Both the position numbers and the translations under genes were made by a program. From NCBI GenBank assembly GCA_025594325.1, contig JANHCV010000012.1:620001-684000 (forward strand): a DNA stretch of 64,000 nucleotides, read 5' to 3'. This document shows positions 2,556 to 59,101 of this stretch, piece after piece; positions within the stretch are counted from its first letter, which is position 1; every line of letters begins with the position of its first letter. This stretch comes from Blastocladiella emersonii ATCC 22665. Lineage: Eukaryota; Fungi; Blastocladiomycota. Under the pieces are notes generated by a model. It worked only from the letters and a program-made list of their open reading frames with translations, ran no database searches and was not told where the DNA came from.

Positions 2556-2650
2556 GGCGAGGCAGCTTCAGGAGAGCGAGGACCGCTCGCAGGTGCGGGG
2601 CCAAACTAGACGGTGGTCGCCACTCGACCCGTCGCCGCCGCTCGCGCACA

Positions 2651-13000: not shown

Positions 13001-13254
13001 TCGTGGTGGAGAAACAAGTCCCGCGGCGGTAGATGGCGAAACGGGCGAAAGCGTTCGACACGGTCCCCTCGATACAACGTCCGGCAAACCAGAGTGATGG
13101 GCATCGAGTTGGCGGGTCGTTCAACGACTTTCAAGCCGGTAAGCACAGGCGAGCGCGCAACCTTGCTCGCCTCGTCACGCCTAGTCATAGCAGCAAGAGT
13201 CGTGGCTTCATTGCCGCCAGTTGCGGGTTTATTCATTTTCTTTTTCGCCTTCAT
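10040..13254 (-). CDS. DUF4470-like domain protein copy 2, intact, about 1050 aa (intron 11617-11678)
   Basis: ATG at 13254 (MKAKKK). Motifs CGCGDL, DWQPEVLARNLLIL and FDVVDTNNLMDSCGLL. A phase-1 GTACGG...TATAG intron joins the two long ORFs with exon lengths 1576+1577 nt. Confidence 0.8.
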
Positions 13255-13383
13255 AGTTGCCAGTTGAGGAGCGTGAGAACCGGCGCGACGCGTTCGAGAT
13301 CTCGATCCGGCGCCGAACAGCTGCGGTCGCGTGACCTGTGGCGCAACGCGTCGCGATCGATCACTGTGCCCCAGCACAAAAGT

Positions 13384-13443
13384 TTGGTTTGCGATCAGGG
13401 GCTAAAGCCCGCGCCACGCTGATTCGATTGCACTGTAGGTGCT
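13384..13443 (-). mobile_element. Relic terminus related to the right end of the 54.6-58.7 kb Pif1 element
   Basis: TTTGGTTTgcgATCagGGGCTAAAGCCCgCGCCACG...AGGTGCTG matches the reverse complement of 58613-58674 (TTTGGTTTtcaATCgaGGGCTAAAGCCCcCGCCACG...AGGTGCTG). Confidence 0.65.
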
Positions 13444-13639
13444 GACTCGAGCCACGACGCAATAATCATCAAAGCCCATTCAGACGACGACACCGTCTCA
13501 GTTCAAGCCGCTAGCGCCCCTCGGAACTCACACTGACAACTTAGCCTGGTGCTGTTGGGCGAGTTGTGGGGGACCGCTAGGGTTGGCGACCGCTCATTTT
13601 CCGGGCAAGGCACACTGAAATGCTCTGGTAAGCGAGAGT

Positions 13640-14591
13640 TCATGACGATAACTCAGGATGCAGAGGAGTAGCATTGGAACGGGCCAGGAAGAAGCTGGGA
13701 TGATCCAGCAACCTGTTGTGTGCCAAGCAAGTCGGTGGCGCGCGGACCATGCTCATCTGTATGGCGAAAGAGAGCTGATCCATGATGTTCCATGATCGTG
13801 ACGGCGTGGACGTGAAACAAAGTATGACGAACGCGTTGGTTGGTGCAGCGCAAGCAGCAAGCGAGACCCGGCTGCAAATTTCCGACACCATGAACGACAC
13901 TTGAGGCCGGTAACTAAGGACAAAATCAAATGCCTTTGAAGGAAGCGCAAGAGGATCGGCGGATCGACGGCATGGTACAAAACGCTTTCGTTCGAGATGC
14001 ATAAGAGTGTTGGATTGGCGACAGCATTGGGCTCTTGGACAAACGCCCCCGTCGAGAGGAAGCGAGCGCGGTTTCACGGTCCCCTGAGTTGAAGCACGCC
14101 GGGGCACTCCAGAGTACTGCCCGTCGATCTGCTCCATGAACTTTGTCGCGCAAGTCGAGAAGTGGGCATAGGGTGCTGTAGGTAGCAGGAACGTCATGGC
14201 GGATCCGTTTTGTCCACTCTCACATCATAGCATAGGGGGTAGCTCCAAGCTCACAAAAATCTTCATGTAAGCTTCGCACCTCTACAGAAGGGTTTTGACG
14301 GACCCAGTCAACGTCGAGCCAGGCGCGCCAGCAGCGGCAGAGTTCGCGAAGCAGCGTTTTGTTCCGGGCAGAAAGCGGCGAGGTCGCTCAAGTTCTGGGC
14401 CAAATCCTTGTCATGAAATGCGCGCAGCTGACCGTTTCAAAATTCGCGTACACTCGAATCAAGCAAATTCGAGTACAAGAGCTGGCCGACGCAACAAGCA
14501 AGCGTGCGAATCGGGCTTGTTTCACGGGGTTCGGGAGATGGCGTGGAGTATGAGCAAGTTGCGAGCAAGAAATTTGGGCTGCCAGTTGTTG

Positions 14592-14625
<34 letters not shown>

Positions 14626-14890
14626 TACTTCGCGGTGGCCCCCCTTGACCGCAGCTTCGCACACTGCGCGCGCGACTTCGGCCAGGTCGCCGCAGCCGCA
14701 CACAAATGCGTCCAACTCGACGCTCGTTTGAGAGTAACGTTTCGTGCAGAGGCAACTGTCGGAACGGGAAGAGGGCCTGAAGCGGTCGCTTGTGATTGGT
14801 GCGCGACATGCCAAGAGCGGCGGGAGCGAGGCCGGGGCTGTCGCGTCGAGGGGAGAGCGAACAGTTTGAGCTGTGCGTGCGATGCGCATC
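13640..14890 (-). pseudogene. DUF4470-like protein copy 3, heavily degraded
   Basis: Fragments FVCGCGDLAEVARAVCE, WQPKFLARNLL, YHAVD, LPSKAFDF and HAVTIMEH/HGSALFRH occur in different frames. It abuts the left inverted-repeat arm. Confidence 0.75.
14595..14622 (+). repeat. A28 homopolymer inside DUF4470 copy 3
   Basis: 28 consecutive A where copy 2 has ACAAAT-like sequence after GTTGAGC. Confidence 0.9.
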
Positions 14891-15061
14891 GATAGTTTAA
14901 GAAGCAGGGCTGTATTTTGTTTGAACATCCACTCCTCCTCACACTCCTCTGCTAAGTCGTCGCGGGTCGGTACACTCGAGTTGCACACACACTAACAATC
15001 ACACAAGAACACACTCAAAACGGCAATCACACTCTTAGAAGTCGGCCACGAAGCCACGTAA

Positions 15062-15484
15062 TTACTGGCGGACCCAGGTCTTGGACTTGGTGGGGATCGG
15101 GGCCACGTCCGACTGGGCGCCCGAGGCGCTGACGAGCTTGCACCCGCCGAGCACCGACACGTTCATGTCCTTGGACTTGGACGGGCACGACCAGGTCTGC
15201 GAGATGGTCCACGACGGGTTCATCCAGTAGCTGACTGTCAGGCCGTCGGTCTTGGGGTCGTACGACCACTCGCCGTGGCCGCGAACGGCGACGCACGGCA
15301 TGGGGTTGCAGGGCAGGGTCGACATGACGGTGAGCTTGCCGGTGGCCTCGAACGTGGCCTTGTGCGTGTTGGTCACCTGGTACGTGGCCGGGACGGGGAA
15401 CGGCGCGTCGAAGATCGGGGGCGGGATGGCCGAGACCATGGCGACAAGGGCCAGGACGAGGACAACGAGAGCGGCGGCGTTCAT
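15062..15484 (-). CDS. Small secreted protein, 140 aa (copy 1)
   Basis: Signal peptide MNAAALVVLVLALVAMVSA, four Cys, strong C/G-ending codon bias, and a TATAAA box at 15570-15575 (minus strand). Confidence 0.85.
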   Translation of the reverse strand: MNAAALVVLVLALVAMVSAIPPPIFDAPFPVPATYQVTNTHKATFEATGKLTVMSTLPCNPMPCVAVRGHGEWSYDPKTDGLTVSYWMNPSWTISQTWSCPSKSKDMNVSVLGGCKLVSASGAQSDVAPIPTKSKTWVRQ

Positions 15485-15569
15485 GGTTGGTGGAATAAGA
15501 GCTTGGGTGTCGGGCGGAAGGCTGACTGGTGAGGATTATCTGGATGGAGGGCGGGGGAGCCGGCCGGTC

Positions 15570-15575
15570 TTTATA
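15570..15575 (-). promoter_or_regulatory. TATA box of secreted-protein copy 1 (mirror copy at 28493-28498, +)
   Basis: CTATAAAGA lies about 85-90 nt upstream of the ATG, in otherwise GC-rich DNA. Confidence 0.65.
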
Positions 15576-16316
15576 GTCTCGCGCTCCCGCCCACCTCGAG
15601 TTGGCTTCGGTTGCGCTTGAACGTGTTCGGCGCGTCGCGGCGGCAAAGGCTGGCATGATCAATGCGACGCAAGCCCGAGCAAGCAACTGTGAGCCGCAGC
15701 GGCTGCATCAAACGGTCTCGATTTGGCGACGTTGGGACTGCTCCTCGCGACGCGAATTAAGTCAACCTGGAGTTCACTGGATCCGGTGCCCGGGAGCGAG
15801 CGGTGGCGCAGCACGCGCGCACGCGCTCGAGTTTCAGACCAAGTCCTCGCCGGGCACTTTCCTGCGTGCTCCACGCCCAACTCTGAACAAATTTGGGAAG
15901 CCAATATGCAGCTTGAGTTTGAGCCGTGTGGTGGACCTTTCGGGGCGGCTCAAATGGGAAATCGAGACGTTGAATGCCATAGAGCAAGAACGATTGCATT
16001 TCGTGGGTCGGGTTCTCGCTTGCGGGTGAGCTGATGGGACGGAACTGGCAGGTGGCAAGTGGCGCAGTCGAATGCACTTGCAGTTAATTATCGCGTGGCG
16101 GGCCTCCGGAAAAGCTCAACTGGGTGATCGCTCGTGACGCGCTTCGCCGCGCTACTTTGAGGAACGCTCATGAGCTTTGATACGGCCGACCCGAGCGGAT
16201 GACCGCCATGGATTTTGTCTCGAGCAAGAAACCTGGACGACAACGTATGCCGTTTCCAATGCAGGGGCGGGGATAGACGGTGTGTGACGGCCACGTCGGT
16301 CGCAAGGTAAAAATCG

Positions 16317-17620
16317 TGGCCGAGAGAACGGGTAGTGTCTGTAACGTGGTCAGAGCTGCCGCGAGGTAGACGTTCTTTGAGTGTGGATGGGTGCAAAGTT
16401 CAATACACCCTCCACCGGTTGCCTAAGCCCCGGATGATAACTGCGACGACGACATCACGACAATTTAGCGGACATCCTTTTGCCACTTTCGCCGGCTCGT
16501 GCATTGCGTTGCACCGACTGGTCCGACTCCGCCGGCAGTTTTTGTGAGGGTTTGACGATAACAATCTCCAGCAAAACGCGTCGCCAACGGAGGTGCGAGG
16601 CGTGGGTGCGAGACACGGATGCGAGACGCGTTCTGAAATCAGCTGATCGCGGACACTGGCCAATCTACGTTCGCGCCCACTCTGCTGATCGCAACCCGCG
16701 ACGAGACCACGCGTGATGCACAAACACACTCACCAACGAAATGCGGACGTAATCCGCCGCGGACGTTAGCGCTCTTTAACCCATGCAGCTGACTCGGGAA
16801 TCAAGTGGACCAGTCACCACCAGCGCCGTGTTCCATCCCACGGTGCTTCTCATCAACTGGTCGTGTGTGCCACGTCGCTCGCCCGGTCCAACGGGATGCG
16901 TAACGTCATCGTGGTCGCGGCCAGAAACGGGACCTCGCGCGGGGTGTGTCTCGTGCGCTGCCGTACGAGCTGTTCAAAATTTTAAAAGCAACCGAAATAA
17001 CCCGATGACCACCTTGGACGTTGTCTCGAGCCACGACGCATTAATCATCGAGGGCAACTTGGACGACGTCGGGCCAGTCTAGACCGGGAGCACGCCCCGC
17101 AACCCGGCACTCAGTGATGGCAGCCAACTGCAGAGTCGTCAAGTGGTGGCGACGCGACCTGAATGCGACCGCCCGAGCTCGTGCACTCAGCTTCAGGAAG
17201 CCTGGACGACAAAGCAAGACGTGGGATTAGTGGGAGGGGAGGGAAACAGCGTACTACGGCAACGCCGGCCGTGAGGCCATGGGCGTGGCCGAGAGCATGG
17301 AGGGTGTCTGCAACGTGGTCCGAGCTGCTCGAGTGGTAAGCCAACCTTGTGCGTGTAAGGGGTCGAAGTCCAGTGTTCGACACTCCCACCGGTTAGACTA
17401 CGCCCTGGGCTGGCGCCGACGATTACACGACAGCGCAGCAGACACCTTTTGCCACTCTTGCTGGATCGCGAATTTCGTTGCACCGATTGTTACATTTTCT
17501 CAGGCGCCTTTTCTGGAGAGTTTGCGAGTACTTATTCCAGCGAAACGCGTCGTTGACGTGGGCGCGTGGGTGCGAGACACGGGTGCGAGACGCGTCGCGA
17601 AATCACCTGATCGCGGACGC
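16317..17620 (+). repeat. Two diverged direct copies of a unit of about 340 bp (16317-16655 and 17285-17619); mirrored in the right arm
   Basis: Shared blocks GTGGCCGAGAG, GTGTCTG(T/C)AACGTGGTC, CACCGGTT, TTTTGCCACT and GCGTGGGTGCGAGACACGG(A/G)TGCGAGACGCGT...TGATCGCGGAC recur with a period of about 965 bp. Confidence 0.75.
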
Positions 17621-39977: not shown

Positions 39978-40805
39978 GTGGTGAGGCGAGCGAGGCGATG
40001 CGGAAATGTATGACGGTTGAGTATGAGCTTGGAAACTGGTTCGGGGCTGCGGAGGGGCGAGCCAGCGCGAGAAGCTTTACGGGTGAAGTAGGGCCGACAC
40101 GCTTTATGGCTCAAACTGATCCACCACGGCGGCCATCTGTGAGGTTTGCGCGTGCGCGGACGACGGCCAGGACCTCGCGATAGCGCCCCAAGGAACAGGC
40201 TACGTCGCCGCTGCGGGCGCCGCGCTCAGCAGCGCTCCGCCATGCATCGCGCTTGCTCTTGCAGCACTCGGCGCGCGTAAGGGATGGGCCAAGCTGCGAC
40301 CAAGCTGCTGGTACAGTAGCTGAGAGACTTTCTTGCCAGGGTCGCTTAGTAGCTGTCGTCACGGAAGCGTCGCTCGCTGCTTTGGGCTGAGCTGATCTTC
40401 GGAGCTGACAAAGTGTTTCGCTCGGTGCTCCCACCGGCTAAAACTGTTTCATCTACATCTATACGCCAGATATAATGACCTTCGTCCGAAGAGCGACCAC
40501 GAAGGCCGCGCAACCAATCGAGCGCGTCGCGTCGCTCTCCCCAGCCATATCCAGGCAAGCTCTTCGATGGAGAGGGCTTTGTATGAACTCGGTTATCCCA
40601 CGGCTGCACGGCAGCTCAGCGGCATTGCGAAGCTCCTGGAGACAGCGGGAGGCAGGGGCAGAGACGCGTTGCGATATCATGTGAGGCTCACGCGAGCGGT
40701 GATTCAGGTTCTGATCAAGCCGCTTGCGGCTCACTGGCGGCAGAACCCCTGCTGGCGGTCGTCGCTCCTCCGTAAACCACTACCATCAAGCGAAAACCGG
40801 CTACC

Positions 40806-43207
40806 ATGAAGCAAAACTTGATGCAACCGACCCGACGCGGGAAATGAGACACCCACAAGCTTCCGCTTGCCGATCTCCCGACCGAACTTCTCGCCGCGGT
40901 GCTTCAGCTCGCGAGGCCGCGCGACCGCGTGCTTACCGCGAGCCGCAAGCTCCAGGCCCTTGTTGCCCAGCCCGACGTCTCGTACATCTGGAACCGCCGT
41001 CGGCTGTCCCCGTGGATTTGGACCGCACTTCGCCAAAGCGGCTACTACCGCAAGCTGCCCGCCACTGACCTTTCCGAGTACCTCTCACAAGCCAAGCCGA
41101 GGCAGCTGTCCAATCCCGGCCGAAGCTTCTATCGCGCTGCCTCGGGCGTTTTTCTCCGCATGATTCAGCTCGGCTCGGCCGCAGCGGGCAAGCTTGATCC
41201 GACTCGGTTCTCTGCAGCTTTTGACGCGCTCGAATTCGGCCCCAAGGACGACTCGGACCTCTCTTTGGGGTGGGAGTCGTCAGAATCGGAGCCCGAGTCA
41301 GAGTCAGTAGCTGACCCCGAATCTGAATCTGAATCTGAATCTGAATCTGAATCTGAATCCGAATCCGAATCCGAATCCGAATCCGAATCCGAATCCCAAT
41401 TCGAGTCCGAAGATTTTTCGGGCTCGGAGGAGGCGAACGAGGAAGAGGAGGACGACGGCGCTGAGCCTGACGAGAGCGACTCGCTTGTCAACACAAGCGA
41501 TGACGAAACGGTCTTGTCCACGAGCTTCAAGCCCAAGGTTCCCTCATACCTCGCATCGCCCGTCATTGCTCAGTTCCAGCTTCTCGTTTTTGTCGCCCTG
41601 CAAGGCGACGAGGATTTGTCTCGGCGGCTACTGGACGATACTCATGCGCGCGCCCCCGGCCTGCTTCAACTTGCCCGCGACGACTGGTGCTGGATGCCTC
41701 CGATTTTCAACAGCTCTGGATACCATAACCATTTTGCTTACGCGGAACTTGGCCATCCGGTGACCTTGCGCAACTATCTGGCTCTCCGCGCGGTGTTTGC
41801 GTGGAACCCAGCGTTCCTGGAACAGCTGACCGAATCGGACCTCACGGTCACTTTGCCACCGCTTCGTAGCTCACACATGTTCAGTGTAAATTCGCTGCTC
41901 CGTCAATACTTTCCCGAGGACGACATCAAGGGAGTTACCAAGGTGACGCGCACGCTTGATTGGCTTTCCCGCTTCTCGCCATCAACTCTCGCTTGCTTGT
42001 TCAAGTCGCAGCTTGCTTCTTGTCTGAAGGAACTGACCCGGGATGTAATCCGCTCAACCGGTTTCCGTGATCCCATTGACACGGCAACTCTTACTTCTAT
42101 GCTGACGTACACGCTTACAAACGGCACTGGCGAGCTCGACAATCTCGCTGCTCGGATCGAGGAGCGTCTCCACAATGTTGTTCTCACTGGTACGTTGTCA
42201 GCAACCGTGCTGCAGTCTATTGAACTAACCGCGTTTCTTCTCTCGCACGTCGTTGCATCTCAGGCTTCTGGCTGTGCATATGCCCTGCCAATGCCGGCCA
42301 GCTTGACGATTTTGGTGCCTATGGTTTCTTCAAGTTTGCGTGTCTATTCCTGTCGGACAAGATGCCGCTTCTGCTTGCCGAGTTTGCTGAGTGTGTCGTG
42401 CAAGGGCGTGACCCGCGCAGGTACGCAGACTTGCGCAGCTACGAGCAACCCAGATTCCGTCTCAACCAGGAACTTCAAAGGCGCATCCATGCCGTCTTTA
42501 CTGGCTCAATTTATGGCCACGCGATGGACTACTTGAAGCTTCTCGCCGTGGTGCTTGCCAAAGTATCCGAGGACGACGTGCGCCACTGTGGGCTTGCAAG
42601 TTGGTGCGTCGTTATTGTGTTGCAGAAACCAGCGACGCGCGACGAGGCGATGCAAATGATTTCAACTCAACCGAGCTTGGCGCCAAAACTACTTGCCATC
42701 ATGATTGCGGAGCAGCTCTGCGCCAGCAAGCAGTCCTGCGCCTCGCTTCCTGTCGGGCCAGATGATGATGCATGGACTTGCTGCGAGTGTCCCCTTTCGG
42801 GCCAGGCGCCCTGGTTTGCAACCGTGTCTGATCTCATGAGCTTTGGCAACATCCTCACGCAGCTCCCTGCTTTTGCTGTCAACGCCCTTCGCGCGTGGCT
42901 CTGGTATGGACCGTGGGACCGCTTGCGCTATACCGTTGGTGCAGACGACCCGTACAGCAAATCTTATGACCCGCGGTATGGGGATCCTAACGATTTGCGC
43001 TCCAAATTCAACCGTAAGCTCACGAACATTCCGGTCGGGTGCAAAGCGCATAACACCAAGCTTCCTGTGCGCACGCTGGTCTCGATCCTTGCCCAGACCA
43101 ACCTCCACGGATTTCTCTCCATCATGTCCCCGTATGAGTTGGCGGCGCCCGATCTCTGGGCGCTTCTTCCGGATGGCGCACTGGACGCAGTCCGCAATCC
43201 CGCGTGA
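40806..43207 (+). pseudogene. F-box protein paralog A (single nonsense codon at 40845; intron 42190-42263)
   Basis: MKQNLMQ...K*DTHKLPLADLPTELLAAVLQLARP. TGA stands where paralog C has CGA. The rest splices in frame to the stop at 43207. Confidence 0.7.
41319..41396 (+). repeat. (GAATCT)6(GAATCC)7 hexamer repeat encoding (ES)13
   Basis: Read directly from the sequence; lies in the acidic loop of paralog A. Confidence 0.9.
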
Positions 43208-43406
43208 GTCCGGAACTTGATGGGCACGTGCGACCGCCGGGTCCGCAGCGCCGTGATCAAGCAGCTCAAGCGCGTTGCACCGGACGGCTCCTCCAAGCAG
43301 TCGTGAGCCACAGCAACAGAAGTAGAGACGATATAGTAAACACTTAGTACATGTATGAATTGTTTCTTAACGGTTATTCTCACTCGAATGGCCACGGCCT
43401 TGAAAG

Positions 43407-43448
43407 TGCGAGACGCGTTGAGATATCATATGATGCGTCGTGAGTGGC
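43407..43448 (+). promoter_or_regulatory. Representative copy of the dispersed GAGACGCGT...GATATCA..TGA...CGTGAGTGGC motif
   Basis: Related copies at 9311-9344(-), 16620-16646, 17584-17610, 26458-26484(-), 27422-27448(-), 40661-40684, 46442-46483, 48752-48778(-) and 58752-58788. Confidence 0.6.
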
Positions 43449-43520
43449 ACTCTCGTTTCAACTCTGCCGTCAAGCGGCTGCAATCGCGTGCACCGCCGCC
43501 GCTCTCCTGCCAACCACTCC

Positions 43521-45937
43521 CATGAAGCGAAAACCGGCTACCATGAAGCAAAACTCCATGCAATCGATCCCATGGAGAGGGCAGAGCGCTCCGAACCTTA
43601 CTCTGCACGACCTCCCAACCAAGGTCCTCACCGTGGTCGTGCAGCTCGCAAAGCCAAACGAAGGCGTGTTTACGGCCACGCGCCAACTTTGCCATGTCGC
43701 TTCGCAGCCCATGGTCTCTTGCTTATGGAACCCTCGTCGCCTGACCATCTGGTTTCGCAACGCGCCCCGCCGTTCGGACTTTTTCTGCAATGATCCCACC
43801 AACGATCTCGCCGAGTACATAAACAACGTCAAGCCGGGGGACTCCTTTTATCCTAACAGCAACTTCTTTCGTGCTGCCTCGAATGTTTTCCTGACTGCGA
43901 TGCAGCCCGTTTGTGTCGAGTGCGACTTCGATCCCGCTCGCCTCGCGGCTTTCGCCGACTTCCCCAAAGATCACTATCAAGATCAATCTGATGGAGATTC
44001 GGACACCGACCGTTTCGGCTACGAGGATGGCTATCATGAGTATCATTGTACCATTCGCCGCACGCCACTCCCGTCGTGCCTCAAACTTCCCGTGCTTGCG
44101 CAATTTCAGCTCCTCATTTCTGCCTTGATGCGGCGCGACAAGACCATCATCCACTCGGTGCTCAAGGGTACAATCCAGCGCGCGCCCGAGGTGCTTTGTA
44201 TCCCGCGCCGGGACTGACTCACCATCCCTCCGCACTTCTTTGGCTGCGGCTTTCGCCATGACCTATTGATGATTGAGCTCACTTGCCCCATGACCATGAC
44301 CATGCTCGATAATCTGACGCTTTGGGCCATCCTTACCTGGAATGTTGCGTTTCTCGAAACAATTACTGACTTGGGCCTCGCCATGGATGTCCCTGCTCTT
44401 GTTGACGCTTGCACGAACATCGACCTTGTGTATCGTTTCCTTGTAAAGAGTCTGAAGGCGGTCCCTTCACGACCGCGGATCCTTTGCGCACTCTTGATTG
44501 GCTCGCTGGTTCTGCGCAAGAAATTCTATTTAGCTTGTTCAAATCAAATGTCCACCGAGTGCTCCTCTTGCTTGATATGCGTGGAACACTTGTTCATGCT
44601 CTCACGGCTTACAGGGGTGAATTCCTGGCAACAGCGACCATAACGCCTAACGAGCTCGCCCAGCTCATGATTTTTACCTGTCAAGCAGGCTCCATGAAGC
44701 TGTTTCATTTCGCGGGCTCGAGCGGCAGGCTTCAGTTGGACACTCATCACTTGATTCTCCGACGTGCATTTAACACGGACACCGATCCATCGCTGCGCGA
44801 TCTCGTTGGGGAGGTCTCCTCGCGGCTCGGCTCAGAGCTCCCCGGCGTCCTCTTCCATTGTACGTAGCTTTCAACAAGTATCGTAGTGCAACAACGAATC
44901 TTCCTTGCTTACTCTCCACGTTCCACCTACGTGTAGTGCTTGGACTTTGTTTTAGCCCAGCTTGTGACGAGCTTGGCTTTCCTGCCGCTCAGCGCATCAT
45001 TTCCTTTGTTTACCAGCGCTTCTCTCACGAAATGCCTTCGCTCGTGAAACCGCTTGCCCGCTGCATTCGCTCGGGACGCAATCCGTTTGACGCAAAGAAG
45101 CGTATGCCACTTGCTAATCCATGCAAGCGCGTCGACGCGATTTTCGCCAACCCAACGAGCGACCGGATCATTGTCATGGGCCATTTTAAGCTTCTTGCGT
45201 TTATGCTTCTTGCTGGCCCGCTTGACGCCGAGACATGCGATTACACGTCCGCGCTTTGGATTCCAGTCGCAGCCTTGCAGAATCCCGCGACCCGGGACGA
45301 GGCTAAGCTCCGCATTCGTGACCAGCCGGGCCTCGCGCCTGTACATCTTGGATTCATGATTGCAGCGTTACTCGAGGAGGAAGCAACGACCCCGGGCTCG
45401 TTCGTTGTTGGTCCTAATGACACAGCAACGTGCGACCGCTGCCCGCTCTTGGGTCAGACGGCTTGGTTCGCGACCGTTTCGGATCTCTTGACTTTTGAAA
45501 ACGCACTTGCGCAGCTGCCGTCATTCGCCATCGATGTTCTCGGCAAGTTCACGGGGTACAGCTCCGTCCCATCGCCACCTCTTGTCACGTCCAACGACCG
45601 CTCTGGTCGGCCTGTCCAGAAACGTAAGTCCAGCTACATCAGCGAGTGCAAATTGAACGACCAGCGCGCGCTGACGCACCAGGCATGCGTTGCGCACAAC
45701 ACGGAGCTCCCCGCACGCGAACTTGTCAATCTTCTCGTGCAAACCGACCTTGACGGCTTTCTTCAAGCTATGCCAAAGAAGCATCTCATCACGCCCGACT
45801 TCTGGAAGCTCCTCCCAGACGGTGGTGCCCTGGATGCTGTTCGCGATCCTGCTTGGGTTCAGGATTTCGTCACCAATTGCACTGAAACTTTTCTTTCGGC
45901 GCACTTACAAATTGACCCTGGACCCCGGATGCATTGA
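43521..45937 (+). pseudogene. F-box protein paralog B (TGG>TGA at 44215-44217, frameshift near 44460, intron 44860-44936)
   Basis: MKRKPATMKQNSMQ...LTLHDLPTKVLTVVVQLAKP. Colinear with A across both exons. Confidence 0.75.
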
Positions 45938-46566
45938 GCAGCTCAAGCGTGTTGCCCCGATTTGGGCTGCTGGGAGCCTTGAACACGGGGACGCGCGCGA
46001 TCGCGAAGGCAAAAAGGAACGAGGGTGCTTTCTGTGAAATTTGGCATGAATTTGAATAGTTCGATGTTAGACAAGAGTAGTAGTTCTAGAGCTTCAGATC
46101 TCGCGAGAGTGCAACTGTTCCCTCTCCGCGTGCGTAGCGGCCCCACGCCAGCTTGCTGTCCAAGGGTTAACACCAAACAATGCTTCAACAAGCTTAGGTT
46201 CAGGCTGCCAACCGTGATGAGAGTTTGCTCATACATTTTGTGTTGTATCGCGCGGATAGAGGAGAAATTTGCGAAGGACGTAGGGCAGGCGGGGAAGGTT
46301 GACGACCTATCGCGTCTCGCTCCAGCGGCTTTGGTCAGTACAGAACGCTTCGCAAGCGCCACTCTGGCATATTTTCTCGTTCGGGTCGACAATTGACGCG
46401 AAGCAGCAGAGCGCGTAGCAAGCAGTGGCGAGTGCGAGACAGAGACGCGTCGGGATATCATGTGAGGCGACGTGAGTGGCGCCATGTACCGTTTCGTTTC
46501 AGGAGGCGGCGGTGCTGAAAGGGTGGCGCTCGCGAGCAACGACGCGCTCCCCTGTCAACCACTACC

Positions 46567-48081
46567 ATGAAGCGAAAACCGGCTACCATGAAGCAAAACT
46601 CGATGCAACCGATCCGTCGGAGTAACCGAGGACCTCCCAAGCTTACGCTGTGCGACCTCCCGATCGACGTCCTCGCCGCAGTCCTCCAGCTTGCAAAGCC
46701 GCGCGAGAATGTGGCCGCGGCATCGCGCGAGCTTCATAACGCTTCTGCTCACCGCAGCGTGACGTATAACTGGAACCTCCCTCGCTTTACGCCATGGCTC
46801 CGCACCGCGCTCCGCCGCTGCGATTATTACGGCAAGTACCCGACCAATGACTTTGCCGAGTATATTCTCCACATTGGGCGACCGCGCTCGCCGTTTCAGC
46901 CCAACCGCAGTTTTCTGCACGCCACCTCTGATATCTTCCTTGGCGCATTGCAACCCGTCCGCCTTGAATGCGGGTTTGACCCTGCTCAGCTCGCTGCTCT
47001 TGTCGAATTTCCCGAATACGAGGGCGGCGAATCGGACACGAACAGCAGCAGCGACGACAGCTCTGACTACTCCGACAGCGACGACGAGGACAGATATTTT
47101 AAAGATGATCCTGCGTTTCGCCGCAAGACTCCCCCGTCGTGCCTCAAGCCTCCCGTTCTCGCGCACTTTCAACTTCTCTTTGTCGTCTTGATGCAGAGCG
47201 ACAAGGCCTTGATCCGCTCGGTGCTCCGCGACACGGTTCAGCGAGTACCGGAGCTGCTCAACATCGTTCGCCAGGATTGGTTTGACCTCTCTCCGCAAGT
47301 GGACGGAATTCGACGCAGTCGCAACCAGGCCAAGCTTATGCTCATCGACCCGTTGAGCATGCTCGATTACTTGGCGCTTCGGGCCATGTTCTCTTGGAAC
47401 GTGACGTTCCTCGAGACGGCTGCCAGCTTGGGCCTTGTCATGAACGTTCCTGCTATTCTCGTGGTTTGCGTAGATGGCGGCCTTGGGCATCGCCTGTTAA
47501 CGTACAACTTCCAAAATTCTCCTGCAAACCCCGCCGACGCCCCACGCGCTCTTGACTGGCTCTCCAGCTTTGCGCCGACGATCCTGCGCTACATGTTCAA
47601 GTCTGGCCTCCACGAAACATTTCTCGACTATCAACACTTTGATGGAGCGCTTATTCACGTTCTCGCGGTTCACCGAAACGATTTTTTGGACACTGTGAGT
47701 TTCACGGACTCCAAACTTGCGCAGCTGATTGTATTTGCTTGTCGCAATGGCCTTGGTTTGGAACTGTTCCACAGAGCAGAGTCGGAGGGCATGATCACGA
47801 CGCGGACGCTTTCCTTGATTCTTCAGCATGCGCTCGACAGGCGCCTCGATCCGCGGCTGCACGACCTTTTCCGGGTAGTTTCAGCACGGCTTGGGTCGAT
47901 TGCTTCCCATCGCCAAGCTCCCTCCTCCATCGCTCCTGCCCTCCGTCACTTCATTGTCTGCATTTGTATCGTTAATGTTTACCCTCCGTTGATGTGCCCC
48001 CTCGCCTCGCCTCGGCTCCGCATCCCCCGCTTGGGTCTGGACGTGGTATCTGTCGCAGCCTTGCTGCAATACGCAACTTGA
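46567..48081 (+). CDS. F-box protein paralog C, open but lacking the exon-2 half present in A and B
   Basis: LTLCDLPIDVLAAVLQLAKPRENVAAASREL F-box-like motif. Homology to A and B is lost after SARLGS. Confidence 0.65.
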   Translation: MKRKPATMKQNSMQPIRRSNRGPPKLTLCDLPIDVLAAVLQLAKPRENVAAASRELHNASAHRSVTYNWNLPRFTPWLRTALRRCDYYGKYPTNDFAEYILHIGRPRSPFQPNRSFLHATSDIFLGALQPVRLECGFDPAQLAALVEFPEYEGGESDTNSSSDDSSDYSDSDDEDRYFKDDPAFRRKTPPSCLKPPVLAHFQLLFVVLMQSDKALIRSVLRDTVQRVPELLNIVRQDWFDLSPQVDGIRRSRNQAKLMLIDPLSMLDYLALRAMFSWNVTFLETAASLGLVMNVPAILVVCVDGGLGHRLLTYNFQNSPANPADAPRALDWLSSFAPTILRYMFKSGLHETFLDYQHFDGALIHVLAVHRNDFLDTVSFTDSKLAQLIVFACRNGLGLELFHRAESEGMITTRTLSLILQHALDRRLDPRLHDLFRVVSARLGSIASHRQAPSSIAPALRHFIVCICIVNVYPPLMCPLASPRLRIPRLGLDVVSVAALLQYAT

Positions 48082-48315
48082 GATGCGGCGACGCGCCTGA
48101 TTTGCTGCTACCACTCACCGCTTCCGCGCTTTCTGGCATCTTGATTGCATCGCTGCTGTGAGATCATGCACAGGACTGCGGCTCATTGAATGGGGCGTAT
48201 ATTACACGCGAATGCGAGACAGGAATGCAAAACTTGATCAGAACATGTTGGTCGACGACGTCGTCGTCGCTTGCTTGGTCACAGAAAACCGTCAATGGTG
48301 CTATGTCGGGCGGGC

Positions 48316-48640
48316 CTAACTCGATGCAAGGCGAGCCTTGCCAGCAACCGTGACGCGGGTGCGATTTAGATCCACAGCTGCCAGCGCAGGCAGGACTCGA
48401 GCTTGGAGAAGCTCAACGGTGCTGTCGTCAACGACCGTGTTCCCAGAGAGATCAAGAGATACGAGCGACTTGGGTAGAGCGGAAGTCAGCCGCTCCATGG
48501 TGTCCGTGTCAAACCAGTGCGATCGGAGCGATAGAGAGGTGAGCGAGGTCGCGCGCTGGAGCCACGATACTAAAGCGTTGATCTCTGACCATTCCATTTC
48601 GCGATGGTGCAGGAAAAGCGTCTGACGTGGCGCGAAGATT
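48316..48640 (-). pseudogene. RNI-like LRR C-terminal fragment
   Basis: SLTSLSLRSHWF, LPKSLVSLDLSGNTVVDD, LAAVDLNRTRVTVAG. No credible N-terminal domain. Confidence 0.6.
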
Positions 48641-50164
48641 CGATGTCTGTTTCGTGGGAGTGGTTTATCTGGGAGCAGGAAGGCGACACGAACGAGTTCG
48701 CGTCGATCCTCGCGACGCGGCGAACGGTGCCACGCGCGGATCATGCGCGCCTCACATGATTTCGCGACGCGTCTCGCATCATGTCGACCCCCCTCTGTTC
48801 TCGCCAATTCCTCGTGTTCAACTTGTTGAACCGGCTCGAGAAAGCGATCAGTCTCTCGTCACCAGCCAGACCTGCGCCAACGCGGACGCACGTTGTACCT
48901 TCCCGCCTTCGCTCATCCGTCACGCTCTTGGAAAGCAGTGTGATGACCGGCGGCATTTCTTCAAACCCGGTCCTTGGCTAGGGGGTCGCGGAAGTCGTAG
49001 GTGCGACGTATCCGCGTCGTAGAGCCACGGGAAAGTTATTGAGGTCACGAGGTACCTGTACAGCCATGGTCGAAAAGGTTGGTCAGTCTCGCTGTCAGTG
49101 AAGGGATCCCCACGAGGACGCGTTCATGAGGCTAACATATTGCTCTCTCACGCTGAAGGGCGTTGGCGGAAGCGAAGGATCCGTAGCGGGACACGATCGC
49201 ATGGTTATCGACGACAGAAAGAAACATTTGTCTAGCTGGTGAAGAACCTTAAGAGAGACAGAAAGTAGCAACATGTCCAAGCGATCGCAAGGAACAGGCT
49301 TTCATGCACAAGGTCAGCGATGAACCGAACATTTTCTTACGTCATCGAAGTACTAAGAGAGCTGGGTTAAAGCAAGGGTTATCATCAATCCAAGTGGCAC
49401 GAGCGCGCTAGACGCGGCACAGAAAGGTAGCAAGAAGATGCGACGCGAGGGGGGAAGCTCGGTGATCAGGACACAACTGTTGTCTACTCGAAGGTATGCG
49501 ATTGTACGTCGCGTTCAGTCCGCCCGACGCTGTGTAGAATCATCAGTTCGAGCGGGTGGGAGTGGAGGGTGGGGATGAGGGGGTGCGAAAGTAGCAGAAG
49601 AGGGAAAGGGGTGTTCTTTCGTCCTCTTCCAAGGCTGAAACTATTTTTTGAACGTGAATCTTCACCGTGAAACGTCAGGAAGCCGTCTAACCATTGGACT
49701 GGGGGTGCGGGTGTCGAGGAGAGGGGAGGGAGGCGAAGGGAAGCGAGGTGTGTGCAGGGGGGGGGGGCGGCGTGTGAGAACGTGTGCGAGGACGGCGGGC
49801 GAGCGAGCGTCGTCGATGTTGGTCAAAGTAGCAACTCGATCGGGCGAGTGGTCGAGAGGTCGATGTCGTCGGTGCTCGAAGTGTCGGTGGTGGCGATGAA
49901 GGCCGTGGTCGGTGGTGATCCTGATCCTCCAGGGGGCAAAGATTCAACAAATTTAAGGGCGTGCCAGCACGGCCGCGAGCAGAGAGCGGGGCGGCGGCGG
50001 AAGCGAGTGCGGTCGACGTCACGCGATCCCACGCGACCCGTTGCCACCCGCTCGGTCACGCGGCGTGAGACGTTTTTCGCGAGCCGCGTTTATCGCGCGA
50101 CGCGTCCCTTCACTTTCCTTCAGTCTTAACCCCTTGCAACCATGCATCCACGCTGAACCCAACC

Positions 50165-54039: not shown

Positions 54040-54500
54040 TCAAGCAAACGACTGGAACAGCTCGATCGAGCAGCTGGTGCGGTCAACGATGGACACCAGT
54101 GCAGCGATCAGCGCAGCGTCCACGTTTGGCGCGAGCGAGACCATGTACCTGCTGGCGCCTGAGCGGAACCGCGTCTCGCGGAGCGCGGTGGCGACGTACT
54201 GCCCCTTGCGGCCCGTGCGCGGTACGCCATAGAAGAAGTACACGTCCTTCTTGGACATGTAGAACTCGACGAACATGCCTTCGAACCCGGGGCGGTCCGC
54301 ACGAGTTCCCGTGTCACGCGACGACTTCGAGCGCCGTAGCCCCGCTGGCATCAAAGATCTTGAAGCTCTCGTGGAAAGTATACTTGTTCGGGAGGAAGGT
54401 CGAGACGAAGGCCGTTGTCCCGGTCGACGGGTTGGTGGCCGTGATGGGGAGCACGGTCTTGACCGATTCGTCGCAGTCGAAGACCAGGAGCTCCTTACCC
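54040..54500 (-). pseudogene. LURP-one/Tubby-C-like protein, 5'-truncated and disrupted
   Basis: C-terminal RYMVSLAPNVDAALIAALVSIVD is typical of the LURP-one family. An internal TGA and a frameshift lie upstream. Confidence 0.55.
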
Positions 54501-54987
54501 GACTATGCTAGCTCGTTGCGGTGTCAAGGGCCTCGTACCGCAGACGTTCAGTGACTTCAACGGTGGAGAGCAGCGGGTGCAAGATCGAGGGCTAGAGCCC
54601 TAACGAGGGCTAAAGCCCTCTTTTTAGTCGAGGGCTAAAGCCCTCTTTCTAGACCGGGTCGCGGCCGGATAGGGTGCCGACGCACACGTGAGCATGTCGC
54701 CCTCTCGTCATGTGAATGTCCTCAAAACGCGTGACAGACGCGTCGTTTGTCATCTGACCGCTGTGGCGCAACGCGTCCTGGCTGCACACGTGACGTGCTT
54801 CGGCCCAACCCGCGGATGGGTGGGGTTCGGCTGGTCGCGCAACGCGCGTTGTTCGACGCGCGGTGCGCTTTGCACCGACTTGCGCGGGAAGATCAGATCG
54901 TGGGAAAGCGAAAAGTGTCTCTTTGAGCGAAAGGAAACATGAGTATGCGCGAGGGGAATGAACAAAGTCGGGGCGGGAACGAGTGTA

Positions 54988-55755
54988 TCAGGTCGACGAG
55001 GACAGGCGGCCGCTGCGGCGCCGCTTGGGCTGCGCCTCGTGCTCGTCGTTGACGAAGCACTCCTCGTGCTCCTCCTCGGCGGCCGCGGCGGCGGTCGCCG
55101 CCGTGCGCTTCGTCGCGTTGGCGGTAGACGTCGGGACACCGGCTTGGTCGTCACCGATGGCGGCGGGCGTGCACGCCGCGAGCGCCGCGGTTGTCGGAGC
55201 CGCAGCTGCGGCCGCGTCGTCCATGTCGCACCCGACCGACACGGAGTTCGAGTCCGGCACCCCCACGACGATCTTGTCGATGCTGCCGATCGCGATGAAC
55301 GAGTGCGTCCAACTGGGGTCCGCGCAGCTCGGGAAGCCGCCGTACTTCTTGGTGCCGGTGTTCATGCCGCCGGCGTTCTTGGTGTTGGCGGGCGAGTTGA
55401 TGGCGGGCGACACAACAGCCGGCGGATGGATCGCGTGCTCCTGCGTCACGGGCGCCGCGGCGGGCGAGACGACGGCGGCCGAGATGTCGACGGGCTGCTG
55501 GATCGTGAGCTGCTGCGCCGCGGGTTCCGCGGCAATCGAGGCGGCGGCCTGCTGCACACCGTGACCAGCGGCGCCCGATGCGACGCCGTTTGCCGCGGCG
55601 CGGGCGGCCTGGTGCGCGGCGAGGTTGTTGACAAGGTTCTCGCGGCCGTCGCGCTTGCACTCGTGGCCCTTCATCGTGCGCGGCACGCCTGCCGAGGTGA
55701 AGGCCTCGTCGCCGGGGAAGCCCGGGTCGTCGTCGGATTCCGACGAGTCCGACAT
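54988..55755 (-). CDS. Element-borne Ala-rich orphan protein with a C-terminal NLS-like motif (PKRRR)
   Basis: Codon pattern is coding-like on the minus strand (GAC GAC GAC CCG GGC TTC...), with ATG at 55755 and TGA at 54988. Confidence 0.6.
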   Translation of the reverse strand: MSDSSESDDDPGFPGDEAFTSAGVPRTMKGHECKRDGRENLVNNLAAHQAARAAANGVASGAAGHGVQQAAASIAAEPAAQQLTIQQPVDISAAVVSPAAAPVTQEHAIHPPAVVSPAINSPANTKNAGGMNTGTKKYGGFPSCADPSWTHSFIAIGSIDKIVVGVPDSNSVSVGCDMDDAAAAAAPTTAALAACTPAAIGDDQAGVPTSTANATKRTAATAAAAAEEEHEECFVNDEHEAQPKRRRSGRLSSST

Positions 55756-58519
55756 GTTCACGTCGCAGAGGAACCGCGGCCGCGGCGGTGCCGTCAGCGT
55801 CGCGCGAGCCGGACCCGTGCTTGACGTCGTCGGTCAGTCGGAGAACGTCATTGTTCTCGACACGACTATCGTCAACTCGGACGTGGAGGGCATCCTGGCC
55901 GACGACGGCGAAACCGAGGCGAGCCTCGAGCGCATCGAGAGCGTGACTTCTACGCCGATCCCTGGAATGGGCCACGGCATGATGGGCACCCAGCTCTTCC
56001 CCGACGTGCAGCCGTTCGATGTCAACGCCGCGCCGCCGCCGCCGCCGTACCTCGAGACACCCATCTCGCCGACTGACGTCAAGAAGATCATGGCTCAACT
56101 ATGCGCTGCCGCGGCTCAAGGTCATCCGACTGCGGATGTCGGCGCCGTACCTGTCGTTCCCGGGCCCGGGCAGCCACCCATGATCGGTATTGTTCCCGCA
56201 GTGCCATCTGGAGCCTCGACAAACACATCTCAGCATGGTATCGACCCGGAAATGGCCGTCGACGTGCCCGAACCAGAACTCGGACCAGCCGTCGACGTTT
56301 GGCGCAGCGCCTTCACGACCACGCCAACGGATCCTGACGCGCGCGCGCGGTTCCTCGTCACCAAAGCCGCGGACTCAATCAGCAACTTTGCCTACGACAC
56401 ACGCGGCGACGAGTGGAGCGACGAGGAGCAGCGCACTGTGCACACGCCCGCGTACGCGAGCCTCGCGCAGGTCTCGCTCAAGTTCAACCTCAACGAAGAG
56501 CAGCACCGCGCGTTCGTGCTCTTCCTCATGCCGCTCATCGACACCTTCATCGGCGGCAACGCAGGTATCTCAGACGCTGCGGCCTCGGCCGAGCAGAACG
56601 TGATCCTGTTGGGCCGCGACGACGTCCAACATGTCGTCGGCACCGCGGCCCTCCCGCCCATGAGCAAGGACCGGACGCCGATCATCCTCACCGGCTCGGG
56701 CGGCACGGGCAAGTCGCGCGTCGTCGATGCAATCCGATACTTTCTCGCGTCCTGGAACCGGGAAAAGTGCCTCATGGTCATGGCCATGACCGGGATCGCG
56801 GCCGCCAACATTGGCGGTACGACCATCCACGCCGCGTTCTCTTTTATTCGCTAAGGCCGAAAGAAAACAGCCCGGACGTGGCCCGTTTGCGTACCGATCC
56901 TGCGGTTGCCATCGCGTGGAAAGGGCGTCTCGGCGTCGTCATCGACGAGTTCTCCATGTGCGACGCGACTTTACTCGGCCGTATCGACGCGAACATGCGC
57001 CTCCTGCGGCGGTGCGACGAACCATTCGGCGGGTGCATCGTCATGCTCGCTGGCGATCATTTACAGCTGCCTCCCGTCAACGGAACTGCCCTGTACAAGG
57101 TGCCCGCCGTGCTCAACGACGCGCCGGACTCGTTCTACCTGCGCATGACGTCAAAGCAATTGACGGTCCCCGAGCGCGTGGATCGAGGCCAGGTCGCGTA
57201 CTGGCGCACTACACGCGCTGTTCGTCTCGTGAAGAGCAACCGATTTGTCGACGATCCTCCATGGGGCAACGAAATGGACGCGCTCCGCCTCGTCGAGGCG
57301 TCGGACACGCTGTGCGACCTGATCAACTCGCGTACGACCGCCCAGCTTCAGCAGCAGGTCGACGAAAACGGCAACAACGTCCTCAAGGAGATCCTCAAGA
57401 AGCCCGGACTCACGGTTATCGCGCCTGACAACCACACGCGCCACGCCTTCAACCTGCTCTACACGCGGCTCGCAGCAGCAAACCCGAACCGCATCGTGTT
57501 CCAGATCAAGGGCAACATCACGCGCCCGCGTGATAGGCGCCGCACGCGTGAACGCGTCGCCATCTGCGACAAGGACGTGTTCCGCCTCGGAGGAGAGCCA
57601 GAAACCACGACTGAACTGCCGGCCATCCTCGAGCTCTTCGTCGGAATGGAGATGCGCGTCAAGACCAACCAGTGCGTAGCAAAGGGATGCGCGAACGGTG
57701 CGGTTGGCGTCGTGCACCACATCGACTGGAAGCCCGACACCACGTTCACGCGAACCGCGTCCAACATGTACCGGCCATCCTGCGCTCCACTCAACGTGTG
57801 GAATCGACCTGCCCGACGCTCCTCGTGGCCCTCGCTTCCCGGGCATGCCGGCCGCGTGGCCTGACACGGTCATCCCGCTTGCCGTGGAGAAGAAGGACTT
57901 CCTGTACATGGCGGGCGGTTCCACGTCGCGAGAGCGGGTCGTCAGCACAACGGGGGATTCGCTCCCGCTCTGTGTCAACAACACCAAAACCAACAGGAGC
58001 AAGTATCCTAATCATGTCGTCGCGCACATCGAGCAGTACCCAATGGTGCCAGCCTTCGCCATGACGGTCCACGGGGTTCAAGGCGTGACCAAGCACGTCA
58101 TCGCCCTGGCAGATCCGCGTCCCGCGGGCATGGAGCGTCTCATCAGCGGCGCTTCCCTGTACGTGGCGTTATCGCGGCTTCGTCGCTCAAAGTACCTGCG
58201 GGTGCTTCAGCCGATCCCAAGAGCCGTGCTCAAGTCCATGAAGCCGGATCCACTCGCAGTGGCCGAGGACAAGCGGCTCCAGATGCTCGACGAGCTGACC
58301 AAGACCGCTTTCGATCAAGGTACAGCCATCGCACCAGGCGACCCGTGCATCGCCAAGCTCTTCGACGACGCGATTCTCTTCTCGCGCCAGCACGCGGGTG
58401 AGAAGCTAGTCGCCAAGCGCGCGTCCGATGCTCTCAACGCAAGGTTTCGGCGATTGGCCAAGAAACGTGCTGGAGGCGAGGACGGCTCACAGAACGCCAA
58501 GAAACAGAAAACACAGTAG
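55754..58519 (+). pseudogene. Pif1-family SF1B helicase with two 1-nt frameshifts (about 56845 and 57802)
   Basis: LNEEQ, LTGSGGTGKS, AMTGIAAANIGGTTIH, VIDEFSM, PFGG..V.LAGDHLQLPPV, SNRF, TNQCVAKGCANG, PAFAMTVHGVQG and YVALSR are spread across three frames. Confidence 0.9.
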
Positions 58520-59101
58520 AGTATTAACGTAGTGTATTCCATCATCTAATCCATCAATAGCACGATTTCCATAGCTCGATCACCTAAATCTCCTGTGCGG
58601 GACGCACGCGACAGCACCTCCACCAGTCGTGCACCATACGTGGCGGGGGCTTTAGCCCTCGATTGAAAACCAAATGCGAAGCGTTTAGGTGCCTCAAGTA
58701 TAATCCTCTCTACCGGACCACGCAACGCAACCCTCTCGCAGGACGCGGCGCGCGAGACGCGTTTTGAGGCCAACACGTGAGTGGCGCAGCGCGTCCCTCT
58801 AGGCTTGTTGCGTGCGCTCCTCGAGCTGAACGTTAAGGTGTAACTGTTGGCTCACGCAAAATGCTTTGTTTGCGTGTGCGATAGAGCGGTCACAGGCCCA
58901 GCTGCAGCGAGCTGCACGGAACCGCGAACCTCAGCGATCCGCACGCAACGCGACGTTCAATATCGCGCTATTTCCTGACAGGGACGAACCCTGTGCGAAA
59001 CCCTACCCACCATCCAGCGAGAAGACATGGAGAGAGGAGATACAGAACTTTGCGAGTATATACATAGGTGTGCATGATCTCTCTCCCACCTGGCGACACT
59101 T

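Follow-up and report, generated by a model that had tools for sequence, protein, structure and literature searches.

A probable dead copy of a non-autonomous Helitron2-type family carrying a Pif1-like helicase in Blastocladiella emersonii

The window that we analyzed is a stretch of 64,000 nucleotides from Blastocladiella emersonii ATCC 22665 (contig JANHCV010000012.1, positions 620,001 to 684,000 of the forward strand). It holds an element spanning positions 54628 to 58703/58704, in which two open reading frame (ORF) systems diverge from about 55755: an antisense ORF reads toward the left end, and ORFs matching PIF1 read toward the right end. The features, in window coordinates, are as follows.

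54585 to 54604, plus strand: extra partial 5′ terminus no. 1, TC and a degenerate palindrome with 2 mismatches; private to the window copy and outside the family alignment
54605 to 54627, plus strand: extra partial 5′ terminus no. 2, an exact palindrome and the 7 next bases, differing from the true end by 1 mismatch; found in the window copy only
54628 to 54645, plus strand: true 5′ terminus, TC and the 16-nt palindrome, forming the left terminal inverted repeat and hairpin
54988 to 55761, minus strand: antisense ORF of 257 aa, rich in Ala, Ser, and Pro, without a known domain
55754 to 58519, plus strand: helicase pseudogene, a disordered linker and a complete Pif1-type (Helitron Hel) domain; Pfam PIF1
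55754 to 56854, about 56880 to 57800, and about 57803 to 58519, plus strand: the three helicase frame segments, from the ORF frames
56845 to 56846 (about 56845), plus strand: private 2-base insertion, the first frameshift, from a six-copy alignment of family A
57802 (approximate), plus strand: private 1-base insertion, the second frameshift, which restores the frame, from the same six-copy alignment
58645 to 58662, plus strand: 3′ subterminal inverted repeat, the inverted palindrome and GA, with 1 mismatch
58663 to 58697, plus strand: 3′ stem-loop, with inner stem 58672 to 58677/58681 to 58686, a GAA loop, and an outer stem, from folding
58698 to 58704, plus strand: 3′ terminus, ...GTATAA(T); the end is conserved and the flanks diverge, and the last T belongs to the element or to the host target

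The ends are built around a 16-nt palindrome, GAGGGCT-AA-AGCCCTC, which is exact at 54605 and 54630, has 2 mismatches at 54587, and recurs inverted at 58645, where 1 base is mismatched; 0 matches are expected from shuffled versions of the window. The initial annotation had described these as three left copies and one inverted right copy and had set the borders of the element at 54584 and 58686. All four palindromes are present, two exact and two mismatched, but the family alignment moves both borders. The true 5′ end lies at the third left palindrome only: all full copies begin at the equivalent of 54628, and their upstream flanks differ. The first two left palindromes are not true ends; the segment from 54585 to 54627 consists of partial repeats of the first 20 to 23 bases of the element and is found in the window copy only. 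On the right, the alignment places the end 17 to 18 bases further out. The GAA-triloop hairpin described after the right palindrome was located at 58672 to 58686 and indeed folds, with an outer stem of 58663 to 58666/58694 to 58697. Its inner stem carries a compensatory change, from A-T in the window's family (family A) to G-C in a sister family (family B). In all copies of both families, the 18-nt 5′ end recurs inverted 59 nt before the 3′ end, which reads ...GTAWAA(T). Furthermore, in a tail-to-head tandem, ...TATAA is fused directly to TCGAGG, a precise joining of the ends.

Collecting copies by their palindrome, as had been proposed, showed that the helicase is multi-copy and always palindrome flanked. 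Sites with at most 1 mismatch number 146 genome-wide (0 in reversed controls), and the exact 18-mer end is found 63 times, against 0 in the reversed control. Family A has at least eight full copies at 93 to 96% identity, plus dozens of fragments. Family B is 4.9 kb long, has an 18-nt end identical to that of family A, and is 73 to 76% identical to A inside. The copies have sharp borders and differing flanks, and both flanks of the window copy are unique in the genome. One candidate explanation of the right flank, 58705 to 59100, as an inverted fragment of another element was rejected: this segment has no similarity to any copy and is itself unique. Matches in the 3′ region of another locus, L027, were also discarded as family ends, being a G-rich simple repeat instead. 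In agreement with the initial annotation, no target duplication was seen: among the 15 copies for which both flanks could be compared, direct repeats did not exceed 2 nt. In 23 of 24 copies, A or G precedes TC, and T follows ...AA in 21 of 21. These insertion-site bases are compatible with C...AA inserted in WRT^T, between two T residues as in Helitron2, and with TC...AA inserted in WR^T alike. The element is thus mobile DNA, part of a multi-copy family whose members share their ends, are sharply bordered, sit in different flanks, and lack target duplications.

Both internal ORFs had been described as reading outward toward a terminus. Their divergence stands, but the helicase ORF is broken by insertions of two bases and one base. 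The window copy is dead. All A copies examined are broken, each at different places, and of nine B copies just one (L010, C21:871875-875255) retains the helicase frame without interruption, open throughout its 1126 aa. The B protein ends about 60 aa past helicase motif VI. A frameshift near aa 684, common to three B copies, was considered as proof of a helicase-dead master and set aside, since it lies in a poly-A stretch whose length varies and which is a hotspot of slippage. The antisense protein is of low complexity and poorly conserved: A and B align at 30% identity, and what they share is limited to an acidic stretch at the C terminus and the motif KRRR.

Pfam searches of all element ORFs returned PIF1/AAA only, with no Rep, DDE transposase, or tyrosine recombinase, which agrees with the lack of such motifs noted earlier. 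A Rep concealed in the helicase N terminus or in other frames was likewise rejected: besides the Pfam result, the N terminus aligns to the post-Rep region of a Rep-helicase (RepHel) protein. An AP endonuclease domain was not found in A, in B, in the relics described below, or in L022, which represents the genome's other Helitron2-type family. Among full-length outside relatives of the helicase, the best is the RepHel P0002 (28% identity over 646 aa; E value, 3e-49). In a quick tree of moderate support, built without named HLE1 or HLE2 references, A and B together are sister to P0002 (SH-aLRT, 86); the group holding them also includes the genome's own RepHel (90) and stands apart from a clade of PIF1-2B and bacterial proteins (94). 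A cellular PIF1/RRM3 gene flanked by palindromes by chance, for which the Pfam PIF1 match might speak, is hardly credible: the unit is multi-copy with constant ends and different flanks, its helicase groups with RepHel and not with the PIF1 proteins that have a 2B domain, and the window copy is frameshifted. Thus the helicase lies outside cellular PIF1, its palindromes recur with it, and the mobility of the element stands.

We then compared the families with P0002, a 1482-aa Rep-helicase transposase, by tblastn. The copies form a colinear deletion series. In relics that share the ends, the HUH part survives (P0002 residues about 3 to 190); subfamily A2 keeps the tyrosine motif onward (residues 449 to 674); family B has some of the middle region left, along with the helicase (residues 571 to 637 and 895 to 1459); and family A keeps the linker and helicase only (residues 909 to 1459). 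The Rep pieces in the relics are degenerate, matching Pfam Helitron_like_N with motif I and a decayed HUH. They lie in L018, L020, L021, L025/26, and L030, which have the A/B right end or the 5′ region and antisense ORF. L021 is 96 to 97% identical to A2 copies in the sequence adjoining its Rep piece, so a Rep-bearing relative existed when A2 spread. The longer copies with Rep that the initial annotation called for are therefore there as decayed pieces in relics with the same ends, but no intact Rep of the lineage, nor an intact Rep-helicase with A/B ends, was found in the assembly. Autonomous Helitron2 (HLE2) members encode a Rep, with an HUH motif and two tyrosines, fused to a Pif1-like helicase. 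Since A and B lack Rep and Rep motifs occur only in decayed relatives, the window element is a non-autonomous and not an autonomous member of its lineage.

The initial annotation had offered two readings, a Rep-less derivative of a Helentron/Helitron2-type element or an undescribed helicase-only class. The first is borne out by ends of Helitron2 architecture, a helicase sister to RepHel, and Rep pieces in same-end copies that are colinear with a full RepHel. The second is not supported, because the Rep-less state came about by internal deletions of an ordinary kind and almost every copy is dead. A class in which the antisense ORF product or the helicase N terminus serves as an unrecognized nuclease in place of Rep would fit with both ORFs being carried by A and B and with the absence of an explanatory Pfam domain in either region. 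We regard it as very improbable. The N-terminal region is the disordered linker and middle of a RepHel, colinear with P0002 and partly out of frame in B; the antisense ORF has the composition and low identity given above and an omega of about 1; and relics with the same ends identify Rep as the ancestral nuclease.

The only long RepHel ORF in the assembly belongs to L022 (C2:727234-733033), which has different terminal repeats and a helicase C terminus that is out of frame with a stop. The window element is not a recent deletion derivative of L022; identity is 28% and confined to the helicase core, and the terminal repeats differ. We also considered whether A and B are or were moved by the L022 family, which has many young deletion derivatives. 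Its end architecture is the same (TC, a 15-nt inverted repeat, and a 3′ hairpin whose loop is 3 nt), and its derivatives, at 96 to 99% identity, imply recent activity. Such cross-mobilization is nevertheless decidedly unlikely. Not only the terminal repeat but also the 3′ tail differs in sequence from those of A and B, the L022 helicase is 28% identical to that of B and interrupted as described, the relic Rep of the A/B lineage gave no match to the L022 Rep, and A/B copies, 3 to 6% apart, are older than the L022 derivatives.

Between A and B, the helicase gives an omega of 0.44, against 1.08 to 1.48 in the wrong frames; the helicase was therefore under some constraint during part of the A-B divergence, when Rep may still have been present. 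The antisense ORF gives 0.98 (wrong frames, 0.73 to 1.53). Within families, the in-frame helicase omega is about 0.55 to 0.59 in B and 0.54 in dead A copies (controls, 0.8 to 1.2), and CpG transitions make up 27 to 29% of private changes. Since the dead A copies show it too, we read the low within-family omega as a CpG-driven mutational bias. Selection on the helicase after Rep loss was accordingly rejected as a candidate, and the within-family omega of A and B showed no sign of it. ORF survival was simulated from a majority sequence that is itself out of frame.

These values bear on the idea that the Rep-less families make their own helicase, need it for efficient spread, and borrow Rep alone, so that its retention is selected. 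Three independent Rep-less architectures with a complete helicase (A2, B, and A), the omega between A and B relative to control frames, and the open frame of L010 argue for it. The similar omega in B and in dead A copies points to CpG bias instead, nearly all copies are frameshifted, short B derivatives (L011, L012, and L033) have lost most of the helicase yet keep their ends intact, and the A-B divergence may predate Rep loss. Overall, we judge selected retention to be unlikely. Within this one Helitron2 lineage, Rep was lost and the helicase kept on at least two occasions, and each Rep-less form amplified. It is similarly doubtful that this reflects a Helitron able to split its transposase functions between elements. 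If it does, half-autonomous, helicase-bearing copies that borrow the nuclease alone would out-compete full and empty copies.

The interval from 54628 to 58703/58704 is very probably a dead copy from a non-autonomous Helitron2-type (HLE2) rolling-circle family that lost Rep stepwise and spread in trans. The ancestor would have encoded a Rep-helicase transposase of about 1,480 aa read toward the 3′ end, plus a divergent antisense ORF, and its Rep (HUH/Y2 nuclease) part would have been lost in successive internal deletions. Copies could then have been spread by a full-length relative that shared their ends and provided Rep in trans. This Rep would nick at the 5′ TC, one strand would be peeled off, and the run would end at the 3′ inverted repeat and stem-loop, giving a circular intermediate. 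The relative that supplied Rep has presumably decayed since, and the retained helicase would be a passenger and not a requirement. Several observations count against this scheme: no intact Rep-helicase with A/B ends turned up in the assembly as a source for trans-mobilization; the sole long RepHel ORF, that of L022, has other terminal repeats and a helicase C terminus out of frame; the helicase is kept in all three Rep-less architectures, which could hint at use; and the A-B helicase omega of 0.44 speaks for constraint during part of the divergence.

Known systems offer close parallels. The ends of A and B match those published for Helitron2/FoHeli, which have TC and a 5′ hairpin that recurs inverted 38 to 51 bp from the 3′ end; both tandem copies and multiple 5′ termini are described (PMC5148889; PMC4067079). 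FoHeli1 and FoHeli2 of Fusarium oxysporum (Chellapan et al. 2016, PMC5148889) resemble A and B in their 5′ TC and short hairpin, inverted subterminally near the 3′ end, in the lack of target site duplication (TSD), in a size of 5 to 6 kb, in joined-end or tandem copies, in several 5′ termini in some copies, and even in the ambiguity of whether the first T is the element's. However, FoHeli elements have a full Rep-helicase and an ATTTT end, whereas A and B have Rep deleted and end in ...GTAWAA(T); their hairpin loop is 2 nt long, and a further stem, with a GAA loop, follows the inverted repeat before the 3′ end is reached. The hosts differ as well, an ascomycete for FoHeli and a blastoclad for A and B. 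Chlamydomonas Helitron2 and Helentrons with their non-autonomous HINE/DINE-1 elements (Bao & Jurka 2013, PMC3627910; Thomas et al. 2014, PMC4067079) share with A and B the asymmetric or subterminal inverted repeats, the 3′ stem-loop, frequent deletion derivatives, and near-identical terminal repeats in families less than 70% identical inside. Without an AP endonuclease domain, which in Helentrons lies C-terminal to the Rep-helicase, A and B are not Helentrons proper, and unlike the non-autonomous copies of these groups, they lack central tandem repeats and retain the helicase in full. Canonical Helitrons (HLE1; Helraiser model) are similar in RepHel origin, 5′ TC, 3′ hairpin, lack of TSD, and a rolling-circle model that involves end bypass and an intermediate in circular form, but they have no terminal inverted repeats, a CTRR end, and an A^T target. 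Rep-less, Helitron-derived Pif1-like Hel ORFs like those here are reported from Rhizophagus clarus (Heringer & Kuhn 2021, PMC8788227) and Pleurotus ostreatus (Castanera et al. 2014, PMC4289320). Those ORFs are not tied to defined ends or families, whereas here two or three amplified Rep-less families have intact ends and a traceable deletion series.

We conclude with good confidence that the window element is not a new kind of element but a non-autonomous one, once moved in trans, and the known workings of rolling-circle transposons are unchanged by it. A literature search pairing Blastocladiella emersonii with "Helitron" returned no description of such elements there. The copies delimit cleanly a Helitron2-type family in an early-diverging fungus (Blastocladiomycota). 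Their deletion series, from a full RepHel to the Y motif onward, to the middle region, and to the helicase only, illustrates the origin of "orphan" Pif1-like ORFs; Rep loss with helicase retention is a common decay route for such elements. The result is also of use in genome annotation, as A and B copies resemble PIF1 genes. A B. emersonii gene model named rad14 includes a helicase-like piece.

The window element is a new family, A, within an already known kind of element. We defined its borders by aligning the element ends of 13 copies: family similarity starts precisely at TC plus the third palindrome, at 54628, and stops at ...CAAGTATAA(T), at 58703/4. The initial annotation had placed a Pif1-helicase element at 54584-58686; the element itself is confirmed, and its ends move to these positions, the 3′ end by 17-18 bases. 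The palindromes, the GAA hairpin, the outward ORFs and the lack of a visible Rep or transposase had been described correctly.

54587, palindrome, two mismatches
54605 and 54630, palindrome, exact
54988-55761, antisense ORF, reading towards the left end
55754-58519, PIF1-like helicase in three frame pieces, reading towards the right end
~56845, +2 insertion private to the window copy
~57802, +1 insertion private to the window copy
58645, inverted form of the palindrome, loop TT, one mismatch
58672-58686, stem-loop with GAA loop, downstream of the right palindrome copy and lengthened by an outer stem

The palindrome has 16 nt, with a stem of 7 and the loop AA, and no match to it occurred in 100 dinucleotide-preserving shuffles of the window. 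The GAA stem-loop and its outer stem fold as predicted. Palindromes 1 and 2 (54585-54627) are partial repeats of the element's first 20-23 bases, and these extra 5′ repeats are private to the window copy. Flanks differ entirely between the aligned copies; those of the window element each occur once in the genome and bear no relation to the element. Target duplication is absent in 15 copies, the sole feature resembling one being near-identical 10-mers (9/10 bases) on either flank of a copy of the sister family B at L007 (G000:C17:284987-289882), which are probably due to chance.

The window corresponds to C4:620001-684000 in a genome of 32.6 Mb and 21 contigs. Searched with the element, this whole genome yielded at least 8 full-length copies (93-96% identity), along with dozens of fragments. 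Family B, 4.9 kb long, has the same 18 nt at its 5′ end as A, a near-identical 3′ inverted repeat and a helicase region 73-76% identical to that of A; copies inside either family diverge by 3-6%. Genome-wide there are 146 palindrome sites with at most one mismatch and 63 exact 18-mers, with none of either in reversed-sequence controls. The 3′ stems of A and B differ by a single compensatory change, A-T to G-C, which supports a functional hairpin.

The defining features of Helitron2 are terminal inverted repeats that are asymmetric, palindromes at both ends and a Rep-helicase lacking an endonuclease (PMC4067079). FoHeli1/2, of 5-6 kb, carry a 5′ TC and hairpin with an inverted repeat of both 38-51 bp from the 3′ end, and show joined ends and multiple 5′ termini; in its several 5′ termini the window copy is like such fungal Helitron2-type copies (PMC5148889). 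Rep-less helicase ORFs of Helitron origin are known from Rhizophagus (PMC8788227) and Pleurotus (PMC4289320). A literature search for Helitrons in Blastocladiella emersonii yielded no account of the A/B elements. The element had initially been read as either a Rep-less derivative or an undescribed helicase-only element; the former reading is supported and an undescribed class is not.

The base preceding TC is A or G in 23/24 copies and that following ...AA is T in every copy, which fits either TC...AA at R^T or C...AA at T^T; T^T insertion is the rule applied to HLE2 (PMC11417382). Tail-to-head arrangements are common. At L034, ...TATAA abuts TCGAGG without a gap, the junction that joined ends or a concatemer would give. 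A/B ends often lie 6-34 bases apart, tail to head (L010:5493-5505, L032:577-584 and L006, where 34 bp separate an A end from a B start), which suggests that the copies prefer to insert beside Helitron ends. Two pairs of equal-length B copies share a contig: C17:284987-289882 and C17:322295-327190, 37 kb apart and with different flanks, and C20:1089603-1094421 and C20:1389323-1394141, 300 kb apart, which may be a segmental duplication.

No Rep domain accompanies the helicase: Pfam found nothing other than PIF1/AAA in all element ORFs. Genome-wide there are 13 Helitron_like_N matches. A divergent Rep subgroup, made up of about 10 decayed pieces with 54-75% mutual identity, is tied to A/B ends.

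L018, Rep piece upstream of a B-type right end; motif I still present, HUH decayed
L020, Rep, helicase piece and right end in this order on one strand
L021, Rep piece head-to-head with the start of an A-type antisense ORF
L025/26 and L030, Rep pieces adjoining degenerate ends

As a ruler for the deletions we used P0002, a 1482-aa Rep-helicase (RepHel) protein with Helitron_like_N and PIF1 and the closest outside full-length relative (motif I at residue 69, HUH at 170, tyrosine motif at 449, P-loop at 980). Mapped onto it by tblastn, the retained segments form a colinear deletion series.

Relics L018, L020, L021 and L025, residues ~3-190 kept
A2 (L036/L037, the 5.4-kb form of A), the helicase and 449-674 kept, the latter starting at the tyrosine motif
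Family B, 571-637 (partly off the long-ORF frame) and 895-1459 kept
Family A (window), 909-1459 kept and nothing else

Since the deletion end points are unlike in A2, B and A, Rep was lost more than once. In L021 the Rep piece lies within 1.29 kb that is missing from the A2 copies, and the sequence on either side matches those copies at 96-97% identity; a relative carrying Rep was thus present during the spread of A2. A single-copy, nearly complete Rep-helicase with stops, of a sister lineage, lies at L027:4900-9560 (G000:C16:305900-310560). Its Rep is 35% identical to the relic Rep, its helicase is 29-49% identical to B, and its 3′ part has an inverted duplicate at L027:227-1401; no A/B-type palindromic end was found at this locus. 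Apparent family matches of L027:9790-9915 are spurious, caused by a G-rich simple repeat, its 12-base unit built from G, A and T, that is found at >40 genome places.

The B helicase aligns with P0002 over 646 residues that begin shortly ahead of the P-loop and reach the C-terminus (28% identity, E 3e-49). In a quick maximum-likelihood tree of moderate support, built without named HLE1/HLE2 references, P0002 is sister to A+B (SH-aLRT 86), these are nested in a group with B. emersonii's own RepHel (90), and PIF1 with a 2B domain and bacterial relatives stand separate (94). The best database match of the element helicase is a B. emersonii ATCC 22665 gene model. P0001, a model from this strain on contig C18 that is annotated as "DNA repair protein rad14" (1100 aa, XPA_C domain), has a stretch 54% identical to the B helicase, which probably reflects chimeric annotation or the capture of a fragment.

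Every A copy examined is broken, at differing places, and an undisturbed helicase frame occurs in 1/9 B copies, L010. The long ORF of L007 contains a compensated out-of-frame stretch over helicase motifs II-III; in B copies, residue 684 falls in a poly-A run that is a hotspot for slippage. Helicase omega between A and B is 0.44, compared with 1.08 and 1.48 when the wrong frames are used, and this constraint may date from the Rep-bearing stage. Within families, in-frame omega is ~0.55-0.59 in B, near the 0.54 of dead A copies, and CpG transitions make up 27-29% of private changes; we thus find nothing to indicate selection once Rep had been lost.

No intact Rep of the A/B lineage was found in the B. 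emersonii assembly. The assembly's one long RepHel ORF, of 1470 aa, is at L022:1805-6217 (L022 is G000:C2:726000-735999) and belongs to a different Helitron2-type family, which shares the end architecture of A/B, has unlike terminal sequences and includes many young deletion derivatives at 96-99% identity. The ORF ends within the helicase, and the C-terminal motifs run on in another frame (L022:6200-7033) and carry a stop in motif VI, so that even this "autonomous" element looks defective. Given these differing ends, the broken frame and the missing own-lineage Rep, the best-supported reading is that A/B copies would have been mobilised in trans by a full-length relative that has since decayed.

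The two ORF systems of the element point away from each other, starting at ~55755. The antisense ORF is rich in Ala/Ser/Pro, with 30% identity and omega ~1 between A and B; what the two versions share is limited to an acidic stretch at the C-terminus and a KRRR motif. To its left, a minus-strand ORF at 54040-54520 stops near the element's border. This ORF was read earlier as a truncated LURP-like gene; the two ORFs there match no Pfam family, and its missing part is not on the element's far side. Across the window, blocks of ~56% G+C (1-17000 and 40000-50000) alternate with blocks of 68-75%.
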